Below are positions 3,872 to 41,624 of a stretch of 64,000 nucleotides of DNA, in pieces. The position numbers were made by a program, and so were the translations under genes. The notes under the pieces are model-generated. The model was not told where the DNA came from. It made no database searches and was given only the letters and a program-made list of their open reading frames with translations. The stretch is from assembly GCF_030028105.1 (NCBI RefSeq), contig NC_092375.1, positions 164,919,415-164,983,414 on the forward strand, in the 5' to 3' direction. Each line of letters begins with the position of its first letter. Position 1 is the stretch's first letter. Source of the stretch: Mobula birostris. Its lineage: Eukaryota.

Positions 3872-4010
3872 GTATGTTGGATTGAATATTTACCTTATTT
3901 TTTCTTTAATAATGTTTTGATCTATAATTGATATATGTTGTTACTTTACAATTGATATTTCTATAATAGAATTGTTGTAATTATTGTATTAATTATTATA
4001 ATGTTTTCAG

Positions 4011-4298: not shown

Positions 4299-5337
4299 GT
4301 ATTGATTAATAGCAGTTATAATCTTCACTCTCTCATACATCTAATGAGCCTAGACTTCAACAATTTCAAAGCCGAATGTTTATTTTTGCACTTCAAAGTG
4401 ATTCTGACAAGTCATTTGATCATTTCTGTTATATTTTTATCTGTGTTTCTCATTATTATAATATTTTAAAATGGCTTAACACTGATCATTAGTTCTTTAT
4501 TTTTGTGCACATCAATCTCTCCTTTTCCTGAAGCACATATTTAACTTTGAAGACCCAAAGAATGTGAACACCATTTAACAAGAATAAGGCTGAACTTCTA
4601 CAACTCCATTTTCCTGTATTTTCCCTTGTTCACTATGATCTGTAAACAATACTCTGTAATTCTTAGTCTTGAATATATTTAGATCAGTTAGTGTCTACAT
4701 TTCATTCATGGAAGAATAATATTATTGAAGAAATTAAAAATAGCTATGTATCTGATCAAACAATCTGGTTTCCTACTTAAATTGCTGTTGCTTTTATCTT
4801 GTGCAATGGAAAGGCTCCGTCCTAATAACTTTCCACATCCCTGGAGTCCAGCAACATTTCTATCAGGTCATGCAAAATAGGGGCCCTTTCCTGGAAACTT
4901 TCCGATGATTGGCAAAGTTGGGGACAGGGCTTTGCTAACTGTAGTAGTCGCCAATAGTTTTATTAGTTTTTAATTGCATAATATTCAAAGGTAGTTTAAA
5001 AACTATAAAAATTAAGGCAAATAATAAATTAAATAGAACTATTTGATAAAAAATGTTGCTTAAAGCACACAAAGCATGTAACAATTAAAAGCAAACAAAA
5101 TTAACTATGTAAAACTATTGCTCTGCAATTCCCATTAAAGTAAGTGTGGCCACAAATCTTTCAGAAATTTTGTCAAACGTACCACTGCCTCTGTGTACTA
5201 CAATGAACTAACAGTAAGTCCATGTGAGTACGGCAAAAATTACCAATTGATCAAGTTGAAACCATCATTAAAAGTCAGCCTGCCTCAAGCCAATTGAATG
5301 TATGTGATATTTATATTGTTACTCCTTTCTAATGCAG

Positions 5338-5628
5338 ATCATAAAATTCCACCAAACTTTACTAAAAAACCTCTTGAAACAATTCATGAAACAGAAGGAA
5401 AATCTATAAAACTTGAAGCTCATGTTTCTGGTTCACAACCATTATCTGTAACCTGGTTCAAAGATGAGCAAGAGATCTTGCAAACTGAAAACTATGAGCT
5501 ATCATTTAAAAACAATGTCATAATGTTGAACATTAAAAAAGTACAGCTTGCTGATTCTGGTGTGTATACATGTGAAGCATCCAATGAAGTAGGCACTGCA
5601 AGGCTTAATGTCTCTCTGCTGATCAAAG
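5338..5628 (+). CDS. ttn: Titin Ig exon, I78-like copy b (291 nt)
   Basis: tgcag|ATCATAAA...ATCAAAG|gtaagt; DHKIPPNFTKKPLET. Confidence 0.95.
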
Positions 5629-6476
5629 GTAAGTGAAGGGTAATGATGATTGCATGGAGTGCAAATTCTCCTCTTTCTTCAGTCGCATTTATTGGTAATT
5701 TTTTAGAAGTGTTATTAGAGCTATATTTGTTTAAAGTACAAATACCAAAAGGAAATTAAAGATAGTATCAAATAAAATGAAGAACCTAATAAAGTTGTCA
5801 GAGATTGCAGTACATTATAAGATAGCAAGCATTTAGAACTCAGTGAAAGTAAGCCAAGAAATTGATAAAGGCAAGATGGAATATTAGAGTAGACTATTAA
5901 GAAACATAAACATTGAGTAATTCATTATTGTAATCTTCAATAGGCATTCTAAAATCCTTATTGTTATAAACTCTTCTTGTCAGCATATCATTTTGATGGT
6001 ATCTTTTTTCATGATTATACATTGGTTAAAATCCAACAATTATTTCCCATCTCTAATAGCCCTTTATATGGTGGTAGTAAGCCACCTTCTTGAACATGCC
6101 ATGGATTCCCAGGAAAGCAGCTCACAATGCCATTGAGAAGGGAATTCCATGATTTAGACCCATTTGTGATGACAATGATATCTTTCCAAGTCAGAGTATT
6201 GTGTGATTTAGAGAGGAACCTGTAGATGCCATGTGCTTTCTTGGCATTGAGTTCGTAGCTTTTACAGGTCCTATCAAAGTTGCCTAGGCAATTGATTTCA
6301 GTGTACTTTGTAAATGGCATACACTGTAGCCATGGTGCGCAGGTACTGATTGCAGGAAATGTTTTGAGTGGCTTACAGTGGTTGCCTTGTGTATGAACGA
6401 CTAAAAGTTAACTTGTCAGTATGGCATGCAAGTAGGGTATCAAATGATCTTATTTTCATAACATTTTATTTTACAG

Positions 6477-22776: not shown

Positions 22777-23211
22777 GTACGAAAGAAGACACATATTTTA
22801 TATTACAGTTACTCTTTCAATAAATGATGCTATCATAATTGCATTACCTTGGAAAGTAATTCTATTTTAGGGTTCCTTCTAATTTTTTGTCTTTTGTTTG
22901 TGTATCTGTATAATTTTTACTGTATCAGTTTGTCCTCCTTGAAACCAAAAATCTCTAATGTAAAATAGTGTTTGATGATTGTAATTGTCTGATGCTGTAT
23001 AAGCTTTTTGTGTATCAAAATGACAGTTGTACTCCTGCAGCAAAGTTGTGTTGAATGTCAAACTAGTGATGGGACATATTGGGGTAACCAATGTGTAGTG
23101 AACCTGTATATGGAAACTGCTGTTTAAAAAAAGGCAAGGACAATCAGGGAACTGCTAACCTGTTAGCCTGGCATCATTAGTTAGGAAGATTCTGGAACCT
23201 GTAATAAATAA

Positions 23212-26200
23212 TGGTGGTGGCATCCGTTGGTCTCGCGAGACCATGGATCTGCGCCTGGAAGGTCTTGCTTCAGTGTGTGTTAGAACAGCGTCTGTTGTGG
23301 CTGTAGAGGCCCACACGGGAGTGACAGTCTCGGCTGCATCGACTACACTTGAAGGCGCTGTCCTCCAGTAGTGTCTTGGTACTGTTTTTCCGATGAGTGC
23401 ACTTTTCTTCAGCAGCAAGCCTCAGCTTCTCTTCTCCCCTTTTTAGATCTGCATAGTTCCAGCCTCCAGTGAGAGCGATCGCTTGCGATGTCCTCCCACC
23501 TCTCGATGTTTATTTTCAGTGACTTCATGTCTCTCTTGCAAACGTCTTTAAAACGAAGATGGGGTGGCCCTTGTGCTCTCTTGCTGGAGGCCAGTTCCCC
23601 GTACAGCAGGTCTTTCGGGATCCTCCTGTCTGACATGTGGTGTACATGACCCAGCCAGCGGAGACGGCGTTGTTGGTGCAGGGTGAAGAGGCTGGGTATC
23701 TGGGCGTGGGCCAGGACCTCATTGTTGGTGACTCGGTCAGTCCACGTGATGTCTAGGATGCGTCTCAGGCTGTGAAGGTGGAAGGCGTTGAGACGCCGCT
23801 GTTGTCTATAGTAGAGGCTCCAGGTCTTGCTGCCGCAAAGCAGTGTGCTGAGGATGCAGGCCCTGTAGACTGCAACTTTGGTGTGCGTCGTCAGCTTTCT
23901 GTTCTCCCAGACTCTGTTTGTCAGCCTGGCGAATGTTGAGGCTGCTCGTCCGATCTGTCTGTTGATCTCCGGGTCTAGGGAGAGGCTGTCCATGATGGTG
24001 GAGCCAAGGTATGTAAACTTGTGAACTACCTCCAGCTCATAGTTGTTGATGGTAATGGCAGGGGGGTGCTCAGCGCTCTGGCCCAACACGTTGGTTTTCT
24101 TCAGGCTGATGGTCAAGCTGAAGTCCTGGCAGGCTCTTGAAAAGCTGTCCATGAGGCGTTGCAGTTGCTCTTCAGAGTGTGTTGCCAGTGCCACGTCGTC
24201 TGCAAACAACATGTCCCTGATGAGTACTTCACAAACCTTGGTTTTTGCCCTCAGCCAGGACAGAATGAACAGCCTCCCGTCCGATCTGGTGTGGAGGTAG
24301 ACACCATCAGTTGGTGTTCTAAAGGCATGTTCAGCATGACTGCGAAGTAGATGCCAAACAGGGTGGGGTAAGCACACAGCCCTGCTTCACACCGCTGTAG
24401 ATGTTGAAGGCCTCTGAAGAAGAGCTGTCGAACTGAACAACGCCCTTCACATCTGTGTGGAATGATTGAACTATCCTGAGGAGCCTCGGGGGACAACCAA
24501 TCCTGGCGAGGATTCTGAACAGGCCGTCTCTGCTCACAAGGTCGAAGGCCTTCGTAAGGTCAATGAAAGCAACATAGAGTGGTTGTCTTTGCTCTCTGCA
24601 TTTCTCTTGTAGCTGTCGATGGGAGAAGATCATGTCGATTGTGGAGCGTTCTGACCTGAAACTGTACTGAGACTCGGGATATACCCTTTCAGCTCTTTTC
24701 TGCAGTCTGTTCAGGACCACGCAGGTGAAGAACTTCCCAATGATGCTCAGCAAGGAGATTCCCCTGTAGTTGTTACAGTGGCTTCTGTCCCCTTTATTCT
24801 TTTATGTGGTGACAATGTTGCAGTCTCTCATGCCTTGCGGCACTGTTCTTTCTATCCAGCACTGGCACAGTAGTTCGTGCAGGTGGTTTAGCAGGACGCC
24901 CTTTGCGCATTTGATGGCCTCTGGTGGAATGCCATCCAATCCTGGTGCCTTCCCAGTGGGCAGGCTGTCGATGACTTTACTCAGCTCTTCGGCAGTCGAC
25001 AATGTATCAAGTTCCTCCATGACAGGCAGGCATTCCACGACATCTAGCGCGCTGTCCGAGATGCTGTTTCCTCTGGAGAAGAGTTCGGAATAATGCTCCA
25101 TCCATCTCTCCATCTGCTTGCTTTTGTCATTGTTGGTCTCGCCTGTTATGGTTTTCAATGGTGCTGTCTTGCTCTGGGTTGGCCCATTGGCTTTCTTGAT
25201 CCCCTCGTACACTCCATGGATGTTGCCTGTGTCAAATGATGACTGAATGCTTTTGCATAGTTGTAGCCAGTAGTCATTTGCACAGTGTCTGGCTGTTTCC
25301 TGGGCCTTGCTTCTTGCTGTCCTTAGCGCTTGCAGTGTTGCCTGGGTGGGGTGGCGTTTGTGCTCTAGTAGTGCAACACGCGTCACCTCGATGACAGCGG
25401 TGAGCTTGCTGGAGCTCACTTCAAACCAGTCCTGTGTCTTGCCCCGTTTCTTCCCGAAGGCCTTATGTGCAGTGCTGTGAATAGTGTCCCTGAGGGAGTC
25501 CCATCTCTGCTGAGCATCTCCTTCTGGTGGGTCTGCGAGGAGAGCATCCTCCAGTGACAATGAACTCTGCTTGCCTGGAGGCTTGGTGCAGTGCCTCTTC
25601 TTCGGCCGAAGTTTGATCTTGCAGCAAACCAGAGAGTGATCCGTGTCGCAGTCGGCACTCTGAAAGGAGCGAGTCATGAGCATGTTTCTCAGGTGACGGC
25701 GTCTTGTGATTATCAGGTCCAACTGGTGCCAGTGTTTGGAGCGGGGATGTCACCAAGACACTTTGTGCTGAGCTTTTGGTCTGGAAGTAGGTGTTGGTGA
25801 CACACAATTAGTGGAGCATGCAAAGCTCGAGCAGTCGTTGCCCGTTGTCATTCATGCTGCCGATCCCATACCGTCCCAGACAGCTTGGCCAGGAATTGTG
25901 GTCGGTGCCCACTCTGGCATTGAAATCACCAAGTAGCAGCAACTGTTGCTGACTTGGGATCTCCTGTATCATCATTGAGAGCTGGTCGTAGAATTCGTCC
26001 TTTGTGTCTTGTGTAGAACAGAGGGTTGGGGCATAGACACTGACAAAGTTGACAGGCCCGTTGGATGTGTGGAGTCAAAGTGAGAAAATCCACTCCGTCC
26101 CTTTCTCACTAGGCTCTACCATCTTCAGCAGCGAGTACTTCATAGCAAAGCCGACACCATGCTCTCCGGTCTTGTCTGAGCCCTTCCCCTGCCAGAAGAA

Positions 26201-27224
26201 GGTATAGTCTCTTTCTCGTAGCGTTCCCGATTCTGCAAGACGTGTCTCTTGGAGCGTTGCAATGTCCACTTGGAGCCTTGACAGTTCATTGTTACTCACT
26301 GCTGTCTTGCGTGAGTCGCTGATCTCCCGAAGGTCATCTGATATACCAGTTGTCATGGTCCGTATATTCCAGCATCCTAGTCTGAGTGCTGGCTTCTTTC
26401 TTTGTCTTCTAGTTGTGCTTGGTGCAGCGTTTACAGTCCGCAGTTCGAGCTACTTGTATCCCTAAGCTCCACGCACCCAGTGGAGTGGGTGGACTGTGGC
26501 AGGACAGCACCTAATTGGCTGGGGGCTGCCCAGCTTGAGGCGGGCAGTAGCTGTCCAGTGAGACGCGATAGTCTCTCCCTCCGTCGAAAGCAACCCCTGG
26601 CGCCTTGCTCTACACCAGTCGAGCACAGGCTTATAACCAGTAGACTGCTGCTTTCCATGTTGTGCTGTCGCGGTGAGGCGACGCTGGAGTGTCCTCTCCA
26701 GGGCGCAGGCGTGGGAAGGTTGTATGGATGATCAGCAGTTGCCCATGCTGCAAGTCTCCCCTCTCCACAACACCGATGTTGTCCAAGGGAAGGGCAAGGG
26801 CCGATACAGCTTGGCACCAGTGATATCGCAGGAGTTGCCAGAACGAAGTTGAAAGCAATGTCGGACTGCCTTAGGGACTCCAGCTCCGGATTTGTCCTCA
26901 GGGTTTACTCCCAAAGCCTTTCCAATCAGTGGGTATGGCCGCAAGGCAGCGGAGGTTTGAAATCAGAGTTTCCCTCTCTTAGATGGACTGCCATCCCAGG
27001 CTGACGAACTCCATCTACCCAAAGCACTGGTTTTAAGGCGCCAGGACCCGCCTTCACCCCTTCTCCTGTCAGCAGAAACAGTTCCGCCAGGCTTAGAGGC
27101 TAAGCCACACCAGAAGGCCAGGAGTTGGACTTAGTTGTCAGAGGCTATTTGAGGCGCATGTCACGAGGAGCACTTTTATGTAGTCAGAGCTTGTCCCCAC
27201 TACCACTCCTCGGCTTGACAAGCT
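23212..27224 (-). mobile_element. Near full-length RTE-clade LINE (~4.0 kb), antisense to titin
   Basis: Imperfect TSD tggaacctgtaataaataa (23193-23211) / tggaactgtaataactaa (27225-27242); APE and RT domains; short (cca)n tail. Confidence 0.92.
23409..26420 (-). pseudogene. Disrupted RTE ORF (endonuclease plus reverse transcriptase) split by frameshifts and stops
   Basis: GCWNIRT, LQETRL, ADCDTDHSLV, FIDLTKAFD, GVKQGCVL, LFADD and LRWLGHV motifs lie in different frames. Confidence 0.9.
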
Positions 27225-27225
27225 T
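27063..27225 (-). ncRNA. Candidate HDV-like self-cleaving ribozyme at the RTE 5' end, partly degenerate
   Basis: P2 CUCCUG/CAGGAG, P3 GCC/GGC, GG for P1.1, P4 CGGAA/UUCUG, J4/2 CUGA, P1 AAGCUUG/UAAGCCU (6 of 7 pairs). Confidence 0.6.
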
Positions 27226-27729
27226 GGAACTGTAATAACTAAACCAATATAATAGTATGATTGAGCAAAAAGAGCATGGATTTATGAAAGTAGAGTACAT
27301 AAGACTAAACTCCAAGAATATTTGGCGATGTATCTGACAGAGTGGATGAGGGACATCCAGTGTAGGTATTAAGTAATTGGCTTTTCAGAAGGCTTGAATC
27401 AGTTCTCAAGAGATTAGTCAACAAAGTTCATGCATGAATTGAAGTAGCATCTGCAATTACTGAAAACGTGAAAGAGAAGTGGAAAATATCTAATAATTTT
27501 TTTGAAAATAGGTTTTGTACTAATACTTTCTTTAATGGCATATGAGATTCAAGATCTTGGCAATTCAATTTTGCCACATACATTCTTCTTATCAGTCGAT
27601 TGTGCTCTGTGGTCTAATTCGTGTAATATATGTTTGTCAACCATGTTTCATTTCACTTCTCATACATTTTTCAGAAAATGTCCACTCATTTCAATGTCTT
27701 GCATCTAAAATTAAAAATGTTCTTTAAAG

Positions 27730-40881: not shown

Positions 40882-41624
40882 GTACGAAAGAAGGCACATA
40901 TTTTATATTACAGTTACTCTTTCAATAAATGATGTTATCATAATTGCATTATCTTGGAAAGTAATTCTATTTTAGGGGACCTTCTAATTTTTTGTCTTTT
41001 GTTTGTGTATCTGTATAATTTTTACTGTATCAATTTGTTCTTCTTGAAACCAAAACTCTAAGTAAAACAGTGATTGATGGTTGTAATTGTCTGATGCTGG
41101 ACAAGCTTTTTGTGTATCAAAATGACAGTTGTACTCCTGCAGCAAAGTTGTGTTGAATGTCAAACTGGTGATTGGACATGTTGGGGTAACCAATGTGTAG
41201 TGGACCTGTATATGGAAACTGCTGTTTAAAAAAAGGCAAGAAAAATTAGGGTACTGCTGACCTGTTAGCCTGGCATCATTAGTTAGGAAGATTCTGGAAC
41301 CTGTAATAAATAAACCAATATAATATTATGATTGAGCAAACAAAGCATGGATTTATGAAAGTAGAGTACATAAGAGTAAACTCCAGCAATATTTGGGGAT
41401 GTATCTGATAGATTAGAAGAGGGAGATCCAGTGTAAATATTAAGTAATTGGCTTTTCAGAAGTTCTCAGGAGATTCGTCAACAATGTTCATGCATGAATT
41501 GAAGTAGCATCTGCAATATGAAAATGTGAAGGAGAAGTGGAAAATATGTGAAAACTTAGCAGGTCAGACAGCATCAGTGGAGCAGATCTTAAACTCTAAA
41601 TCATTACTTGTGCAGAATCACCTT

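Follow-up and report, generated by a model that had tools for sequence, protein, structure and literature searches.

A P4-less HDV-like double pseudoknot, putatively self-cleaving, at the 5' end of an RTE-clade retrotransposon in a titin-like gene of Mobula birostris

Introduction

Within a 64,000-nucleotide stretch of Mobula birostris DNA (the whole of which we call the window), a retrotransposon lies antisense in an intron of a titin-like gene, and its 5' end raises the question whether such an element is headed by an HDV-like ribozyme and, if so, where the helices and the cut are to be placed. In HDV, a G·U wobble at the cleavage site binds the catalytic metal, and large HDV-like ribozymes of the Agam-2 type are linked to RTE elements. 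HDV-like ribozymes have been described at the 5' ends of non-LTR retrotransposons including RTE, R2, L1Tc and Baggins (Ruminski et al. 2011, as cited in PMC3774820 and PMC6765202; PMC4908430), and those of RTE are reported to cut at the 5' junction (PMC3774820, PMC6765202). A helix in J1/2, the P1.2 'pinch', activates large members such as Agam-2 (PMC4908430), minimal members do without P4 and use the first nucleotide of J4/2 as the catalytic cytosine (PMC10879173), and one non-Watson-Crick pair per P1.1 is tolerated in ribozymes with solved structures, such pairs being present in fast ribozymes (PMC13635239).

A first-pass annotation of the window had drawn an HDV-like double pseudoknot at the 5' end of the antisense RTE, starting at 27225. 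With relatives of the element, covariation and sequencing runs, we find that this idea stands, while P1, P1', P3' and P4 as drawn have to be replaced.

Results

The insertion and its host gene

A GC-rich block of ~4.0 kb (23212–27232; Table 1) is surrounded by AT-rich intron sequence. Its coding region is split over several frames, and on the resulting ORF pieces Pfam finds Exo_endo_phos (AP-endonuclease) and then RVT_1 (reverse transcriptase). The protein homologues are RTE-derived sequences named 'craniofacial development protein 2-like', the closest of which come from elasmobranchs (best 76% in Chiloscyllium, 70% in Hemitrygon). The 3' end reads ...CCACCACCA, without poly-A. A single ORF with an APE endonuclease N-terminal to the reverse transcriptase, a length of ~3–4 kb, the missing poly-A tail and a target-site duplication (TSD) are the sequence features of the RTE clade, to which the insertion is assigned as a LINE from its domains and homologues. 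With its coding region broken, this copy is immobile. At its C-terminus the element's ORF carries a Cys/His motif (C-x2-C ... H ... GLYSH ... C; 23276–23340, minus strand).

Immunoglobulin I-set exons of the titin-like gene lie on the plus strand, hence the minus-strand element is antisense to it, as had been annotated; that this orientation would spare titin pre-mRNA from the putative cleavage follows logically. The host intron is part of a tandem array (window 20958–41371) whose units measure ~2.34 kb; seven of them resemble the flanks of the insertion at 88–96% identity, so that empty sites are available inside the same window. The paralogous empty sites are six (or seven) sister units without the insertion. 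The insertion and its junction are real.

Table 1. Features of the element head and its insertion site, in window coordinates, listed from the 5' end of the element
Feature	Position	Strand	Basis or remark
RTE-clade LINE insertion, ~4.0 kb	23212–27232	minus	GC-rich block, Pfam domains, homologues, empty paralogous sites
TSD, 5' copy	27225–27242	minus	alignment with six empty sites
Revised P1, 5' strand CAGUUCC	27226–27232	minus	7/7 Watson-Crick with 27085–27079; covaries in L023 and L003
First-pass P1, AAGCUUG	27219–27225	minus	unsupported: overlaps P1.2-like helix
J1/2 peripheral domain	27125–27225	minus	P1.2-like helix 27221–27216 with 27140–27135, enclosing long hairpin 27212–27164
P2, 5' strand CUCCUG	27119–27124	minus	pairs with 27068–27063; G-C to A-U in L023/L024
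P3, 5' strand GCC	27116–27118	minus	pairs 3/3 with GGC 27088–27086
L3: UUCUGGUGU + inserted hairpin GGCUUAG 27106–27100 / CUAAGCC 27096–27090 + U	27089–27115	minus	
Revised P3, 3' strand GGC	27086–27088	minus	homologous to GGC beside P1' in L003
Revised P1, 3' strand GGAACUG	27079–27085	minus	directly after P3' (J3/1 = 0)
Linker UUUCUG in place of P4	27073–27078	minus	6–7 nt there in every lineage
J4/2 CUGA, candidate catalytic C27072	27069–27072	minus	CUGA in window and L023/L024, CUAA in L003/L002
P2, 3' strand CAGGAG	27063–27068	minus	pairs 6/6
TSD, 3' copy (TTATTTATTACAGGTTCCA)	23193–23211	minus	flanks and empty-site alignment

The fold drawn from a single sequence

The first-pass annotation paired P1 at 27225–27219 with 27095–27089, placed P3' at 27106–27104, left an 8-nt spacer before P1' and closed P4 over 27086–27073. 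All of its strings are present on the minus strand: AAGCUUG (27225–27219), the GUAGU/ACUAC hairpin, CUCCUG (27124–27119), GCC, UUCUGGUGU and GGC, followed by the 8-nt UUAGCCUC, UAAGCCU (27095–27089), GG, CGGAA/UUCUG, CUGA (27072–27069) and CAGGAG (27068–27063). Of the drawn elements, P2, the 5' strand of P3, J4/2 and C27072 as candidate catalytic base stand. J4/2 also fits C-N-R-A, as had been claimed, with the cytosine first in all five sequences (CUGA or CUAA).

The remaining part of the drawing does no better than chance. When the first 260 nt are dinucleotide-shuffled and scanned with a descriptor no stricter than the drawing, 1.1–2.1% of the shuffles equal the fold anchored at the 5' end and 27% contain a '3' core'. 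With the real P2-closed core kept fixed, 4.7–7.5% of random 7-mers at the 5' end yield an acceptable P1. The drawn P1 alone amounts to +2.5 kcal/mol with a pair probability of zero, and its 5' strand belongs to a hairpin of −28 kcal/mol. The drawn P1' lies within a 7-bp local hairpin, GGCUUAG/CUAAGCC (−8.9 kcal/mol, pair probability 0.95–0.99), which also takes the drawn P3'. It is because of these shuffle and 7-mer rates, the energy of P1 and the hairpin around P1' that we put the drawn P1/P1'/P3'/P4 portion at chance level. Furthermore, we know of no HDV-like ribozyme with an 8-nt J3/1.

Relatives of the head and a revised fold

Relatives were obtained from an exact 21-mer scan of metagenome contigs (L002 and L003) and from a search with the endonuclease piece (L023 and L024). 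L023 and L024 are one locus in two assemblies; the RTE in it is full, with 76% identity over element nt 5–488. L002 (1–3481) and L003 (1–1585), from two ENA metagenome assemblies, are ORF-less and 87% alike; they carry this head minus the L3 hairpin, and both are likely to be non-autonomous derivatives residing in an animal host. The comparison thus spans only three independent lineages, namely the window, L023/L024 and L003/L002, among which homology starts at (A)CAG. The head is missing from L001, a Chiloscyllium copy that is 5'-truncated at element nt 1175, and from L004, L005, L022 and L025–L028.

An alignment-free, P4-less descriptor finds a homologous fold in the window (P1 7/7), in L023 (CAGGGUU/AAGCCUG, 6/7) and in L003 (CAGCCUU/GAAGCUG, 6/7), in each case with P1' right after P3', a linker of 6–7 nt and then C-N-R-A. 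In the decayed L002 it finds no such arrangement, and P1 and P3 are not kept. The head is a nested double pseudoknot in which P1 crosses P2 with P3 inside, and all helices are complete in the window (P1 7/7, P2 6/6, P3 3/3). In the window, L023 and L003, P1' abuts P3' as the rule of a 0–1 nt J3/1 has it, where the drawn fold needs 8 nt. Since the revised P1 strand lies 7 nt upstream of the drawn one, the predicted cut lies 5' of C27232 and not at 27225. In L023 we also considered an intermediate P1 (GGGUUCA/UGAGCCC, 7/7), which was rejected for the P1' abutting P3' because only the latter is homologous and covarying in all lineages.

With this arrangement, the pieces of the first drawing find other places. 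Its P3', 8-nt insert and P1' together form a self-contained 17-nt hairpin (27106–27090) inserted in L3. L023 has this hairpin with another loop, and L003 and L002 lack the hairpin as well as the whole ~20-nt segment that holds the drawn P1'. The true 3' strand of P3 is the drawn 'GG' plus one C, and the 5' strand and loop of the drawn P4 are the revised P1'. As a result of the inserted hairpin, L3 measures 26–27 nt in the window and in L023 and is not the short loop of ~7–8 nt, of which L003 has an example with 7 nt. A P4 helix is found in no lineage, the linker taking its place, yet this does not bar the head from HDV-like membership, since P4 is dispensable in minimal members (PMC10879173). 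The G·U wobble at the cleavage site is absent: the first P1 pair is C27232–G27079 in the window and C-G also in L023 and L003. For a two-base-pair P1.1 between L3 and J1/4, the candidate strands are UU after P1' (CU in L023) and the start of L3, UUCU, which allow only pairs of the C·U/U·U type.

When 27236–27058 is folded, the centroid holds the revised P1 and the minimum free energy structure holds P2, as expected if both helices form a pseudoknot; the folding z-scores are weak (−1.0 to −1.8). The HDV covariance models, which the first-pass annotation had proposed as a check, do not recognise the head: Rfam HDV_ribozyme, CPEB3, drz-Agam-1, drz-Agam-2-2 and HDV-F-prausnitzii gave no match at the gathering score or at E ≤ 10 over 801 nt and 236 nt of the window, and no HDV-family model matched the relatives. 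Twister, hammerhead and other small-ribozyme covariance models gave no match either (gathering score and E ≤ 10; window, sub-windows and relatives). A twister variant, suggested by the 5' AA and by PMC8501958, was dropped on this ground. A search for a tRNA-like head and a protein search with a spurious ORF spanning the head found nothing. The view that the head is only a nested structured leader, HDV-like by chance, was given up once L023 and the insertion of the L3 hairpin revealed P1 upstream of 27225.

Several side observations were made among the relatives. A second conserved module of the 5' UTR (window 27020–26955, minus strand) is a hairpin, UAGAUGGA...UCCAUCUA, common to L004, L023 and L003; it shows some compensatory changes and is more widespread among RTE relatives than the ribozyme-like head. 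In L004, (TGTA)n-type microsatellites (696–936 and 5076–5984) accompany the RTE relative, and sub-threshold matches to mir-297/mir-466 are false positives. Viral contigs and a bacterial MAG also gave matches to a 16–21-mer, which are so short that chance seems to account for them. In L021, a contig filed as a Flavobacteriales MAG, 23 nt (3969–3991) match the conserved core exactly with nothing beyond, which is either chance or mis-binned eukaryotic DNA.

Covariation across lineages

The revised P1 changes in a compensatory manner: in the window, L023 and L003, respectively, position 4 is U-A, G-C and C-G, position 6 is C-G, U-A and U-A, and position 7 is C-G, U-A and U-G. Covariation touches 4/7 pairs of P1 and 1/6 pairs of P2, where G-C is replaced by A-U. 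That all three P1 matches arise together by chance has a probability of ~1e-5. A covariance model of 179 nt aligns all relatives. In the alignment made with it, with P2 added as a pseudoknot, 91.9% of cells are paired, 18/46 pairs are changed on both sides and 0/500 shuffles are as good, against 34–45% paired cells in slid controls, although an alignment fitted to the structure under test leans towards it; the descriptor result is free of that bias. A model of the first 110 nt likewise aligns the relatives end to end, and for J1/2 (helix 27221–27216/27140–27135 plus hairpin) it gives 93.8% paired cells and 10/23 pairs changed on both sides, with 0/500 shuffles as good. The drawn P1 overlaps this covarying P1.2-like helix.

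On single sequences, descriptor hits are frequent by chance (14–35% of shuffles), and such statistics are too permissive to decide. This frequency, together with the weak z-scores, is what would speak for strands that are complementary by accident, in a repeat rich in GC whose RNA has no conserved structure. We regard that reading as very improbable, given that the compensatory changes affect five helices, at positions that are homologous between the three lineages, and that shuffles and slid controls score far lower.

The family in sequencing runs

Thousands of contigs in four runs from four organisms cover the head. The read depth of this very high-copy family goes from ~20,000 (27220–27226) to ~5,600 (27227–27233) and then to ~50 (27234–27240); it ends between 27233 and 27234, and in this copy the P1 strand overlaps the TSD. 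Since depth is kept to 27233, the 5' end of the family appears to lie at the start of P1 and not at 27225, where the first-pass annotation had let element and cleavage begin. It had also expected GGGCUU at +1, which no family variant of at least 10% gives, bearing in mind that changes in the last two bases could be masked by end-clipping of alignments. Its suspicion that this copy, lacking G1/G2, may be dead falls away, because P1 (7/7 Watson-Crick), P2, P3 and C27072 are intact and C at +1 is common to all lineages.

Position C27072 has no family variant of at least 10%, and 27073 varies. The L3 hairpin bears the hallmark of a genuine one, in that its stem does not vary in the family and its loop does (CCU or CUA). 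Family members also differ in the 3' half of L3 (UGG, UCG, ACA), an uncommon feature where a loop belongs to the active site. Most family contigs diverge from the titin-intron copy 5' of 27153 (27153–27201), where their loose-end consensus is homologous and ~60% identical; this divergence places the titin-intron copy in a minority 5' subfamily, the major one resembling L023. Between 26724 and 26795 the summed contig depth reaches 10–50x that of the rest of the 5' region, up to millions, which suggests that this piece is common to a far more abundant repeat, perhaps a SINE.

The family data also bear on the fold as first drawn. Its P1 pairs at 6/7 in this copy, with an A·C mismatch that had gone unmentioned, at 5/7 against the family majority, where P1' reads UAAGCCC, and at 4/7 in L023. 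The consensus 5' end is not complementary to the drawn P1', and these strands show no covariation. The closing pair of the drawn P4 is lost in the family because 27073 is A in ~95%, and the family-majority version of the first 171 nt does not match even a loose descriptor of the drawing. Although all strings of the drawn fold are present, its anchored chance level is low at 1–2% and the family-majority L3, UUCUCGUGU, is more HDV-like than that of the titin-intron copy, its P1' sits in a conserved hairpin or, in L003/L002, is missing altogether, and its P1 has the pairing probability and chance level given above, overlaps a covarying helix and calls for the 8-nt J3/1. Hence we consider the drawn arrangement scarcely tenable.

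Target-site duplication and junction

The last 8–9 nt of the 5' TSD copy (27233–27225) double as the element's own 5' end and constitute a microhomology. The 5' strand of P1 falls within the target sequence (ACAGGTTCCA) as defined by the empty sites, and target and element 5' end (ACAGTTCCA) are identical at 10/11 positions (27233–27225 compared with 23202–23193 and with empty sites, e.g. 41295–41313). Against CAGGTTCC in the target, the junction copy has CAG-TTCC, and it is this lack of one G that makes it a perfect match to P1' GGAACUG. Since L023 and L003 have matching P1 strands of their own, the junction bases most likely derive from the element and not from the target. On this reading the true duplication would be ~10 nt, followed by 8–9 nt of microhomology. 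In L023, L003 and L002, the 5' flanks resemble the element 5' end in a similar but weaker way, and a TSD was looked for in L023 and not found.

The likeness of target and element 5' end could reflect microhomology-guided 5' joining or a target preference. One way would be for the cDNA end to anneal to the target, a step that has been put forward for R2 (PMC3774820).

Discussion

Like the HDV-like ribozymes of other retrotransposons, the ray head is a nested double pseudoknot at the very 5' end, with a P1 that apparently begins at the element's first base, a P3 of 3 bp, C first in J4/2 and a long J1/2 whose helix draws P1 towards P2. Its host, too, is like other ribozyme-bearing elements, being an RTE-clade LINE with no evident promoter that sits in an intron. 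Unlike the known retrotransposon examples, it has no P4, C-G for G·U at the cleavage site and a 17-nt hairpin in L3, and it matches none of the Rfam models (HDV, CPEB3, Agam-1, Agam-2-2, F. prausnitzii); its host is an elasmobranch, and its cleavage is putative. It shares with minimal HDV-like ribozymes (drz-Mtgn, theta; PMC10879173) the few nucleotides in the place of P4 and a P1' straight after P3', and the core of the L003 lineage, with its 7-nt L3, resembles them. These ribozymes are, however, ~50–60 nt long with a short J1/2 and occur in phages and metagenomes beside tRNAs (PMC10879173), whereas the ray J1/2 is ~100 nt, structured, and set in a eukaryotic LINE. Perere-3, an RTE of Schistosoma mansoni, bears self-cleaving twister-variant ribozymes (PMC8501958) that likewise lie at the RTE 5' end and in which target sequence contributes to or overlaps the P1 strand. 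The ray head differs from these in fold and matches no twister model.

Altogether, we think it rather probable that the family head is, or was, a self-cleaving HDV-like ribozyme with the revised helices. The first ~170 nt of the RTE would fold as a P4-less nested double pseudoknot with a structured J1/2, a P1.2-like helix and a lineage-specific hairpin in L3; the helices, their covariation and their position at the family 5' end are observed. By analogy with the RTE, R2 and L1Tc ribozymes, the element would be transcribed within a longer host transcript, and the head would cut itself 5' of the first P1 nucleotide, C27232, with C27072 as general acid and Mg2+ assisting. The freed RNA would begin exactly at the element's first base and then be reverse-transcribed into new sites. 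In the titin-intron copy the head is intact; being antisense to titin, its RNA would be made only from antisense transcripts. Because there is no G·U at +1 and no clear P1.1, L3 is long and no curated model matches, self-cleavage is inferred; its exact site and any role in translation are likewise putative.

The absence of a G·U at +1, of a clear P1.1 and of an Rfam match, together with the variable L3, would suit the same pseudoknotted fold without self-cleavage, that is, a 5' leader with a role in transcription, in starting translation or in binding the protein that the element encodes, and with the RNA 5' end set by transcription initiation. In favour of such a leader, structure and covariation are seen where catalysis is inferred, the R2 protein binds a pseudoknot in the R2 5' UTR and HDV-like folds have been proposed as IRES (PMC6765202), and a second conserved hairpin module follows at 27020–26955. 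Yet the topology is specifically that of HDV (P1 crossing P2, a 3-bp P3, P1' abutting P3' and C-N-R-A before P2'), the C is invariant, P1 starts at the family 5' end, and characterised RTE relatives use such ribozymes (PMC3774820). We therefore hold a non-cleaving leader to be unlikely, if far from negligible.

For the self-cleaving reading, a fuller version can be formulated, in which an active HDV-type ribozyme with three departures from the canon (C-G for G·U, a missing P4 and a hairpin inside L3) would stand at the front of an RTE family that has thousands of copies in rays and occurs in unrelated hosts too. The element's first 8–9 bases, its P1 strand, would pair with a target of similar sequence, and the ribozyme would thereby be restored when the 5' junction forms. 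Taken as a whole, this version is tentative and, in our judgement, possible but on the doubtful side.

That HDV-like ribozymes head RTE elements is already established, and the principle is not new. If the cleavage is true, the HDV core would be workable despite the absence of G·U and P4 and with a hairpin in L3, which bears on searches with descriptors and covariance models, all of which missed this head RNA. For annotation, the lesson is that the cut site and helices lie elsewhere than a reading of a single sequence had placed them. Again if cleavage is true, a vertebrate (elasmobranch) LINE family would carry such a head at very high copy number, and the microhomology at the junction might be the reason why a LINE without site specificity has uniform 5' ends.
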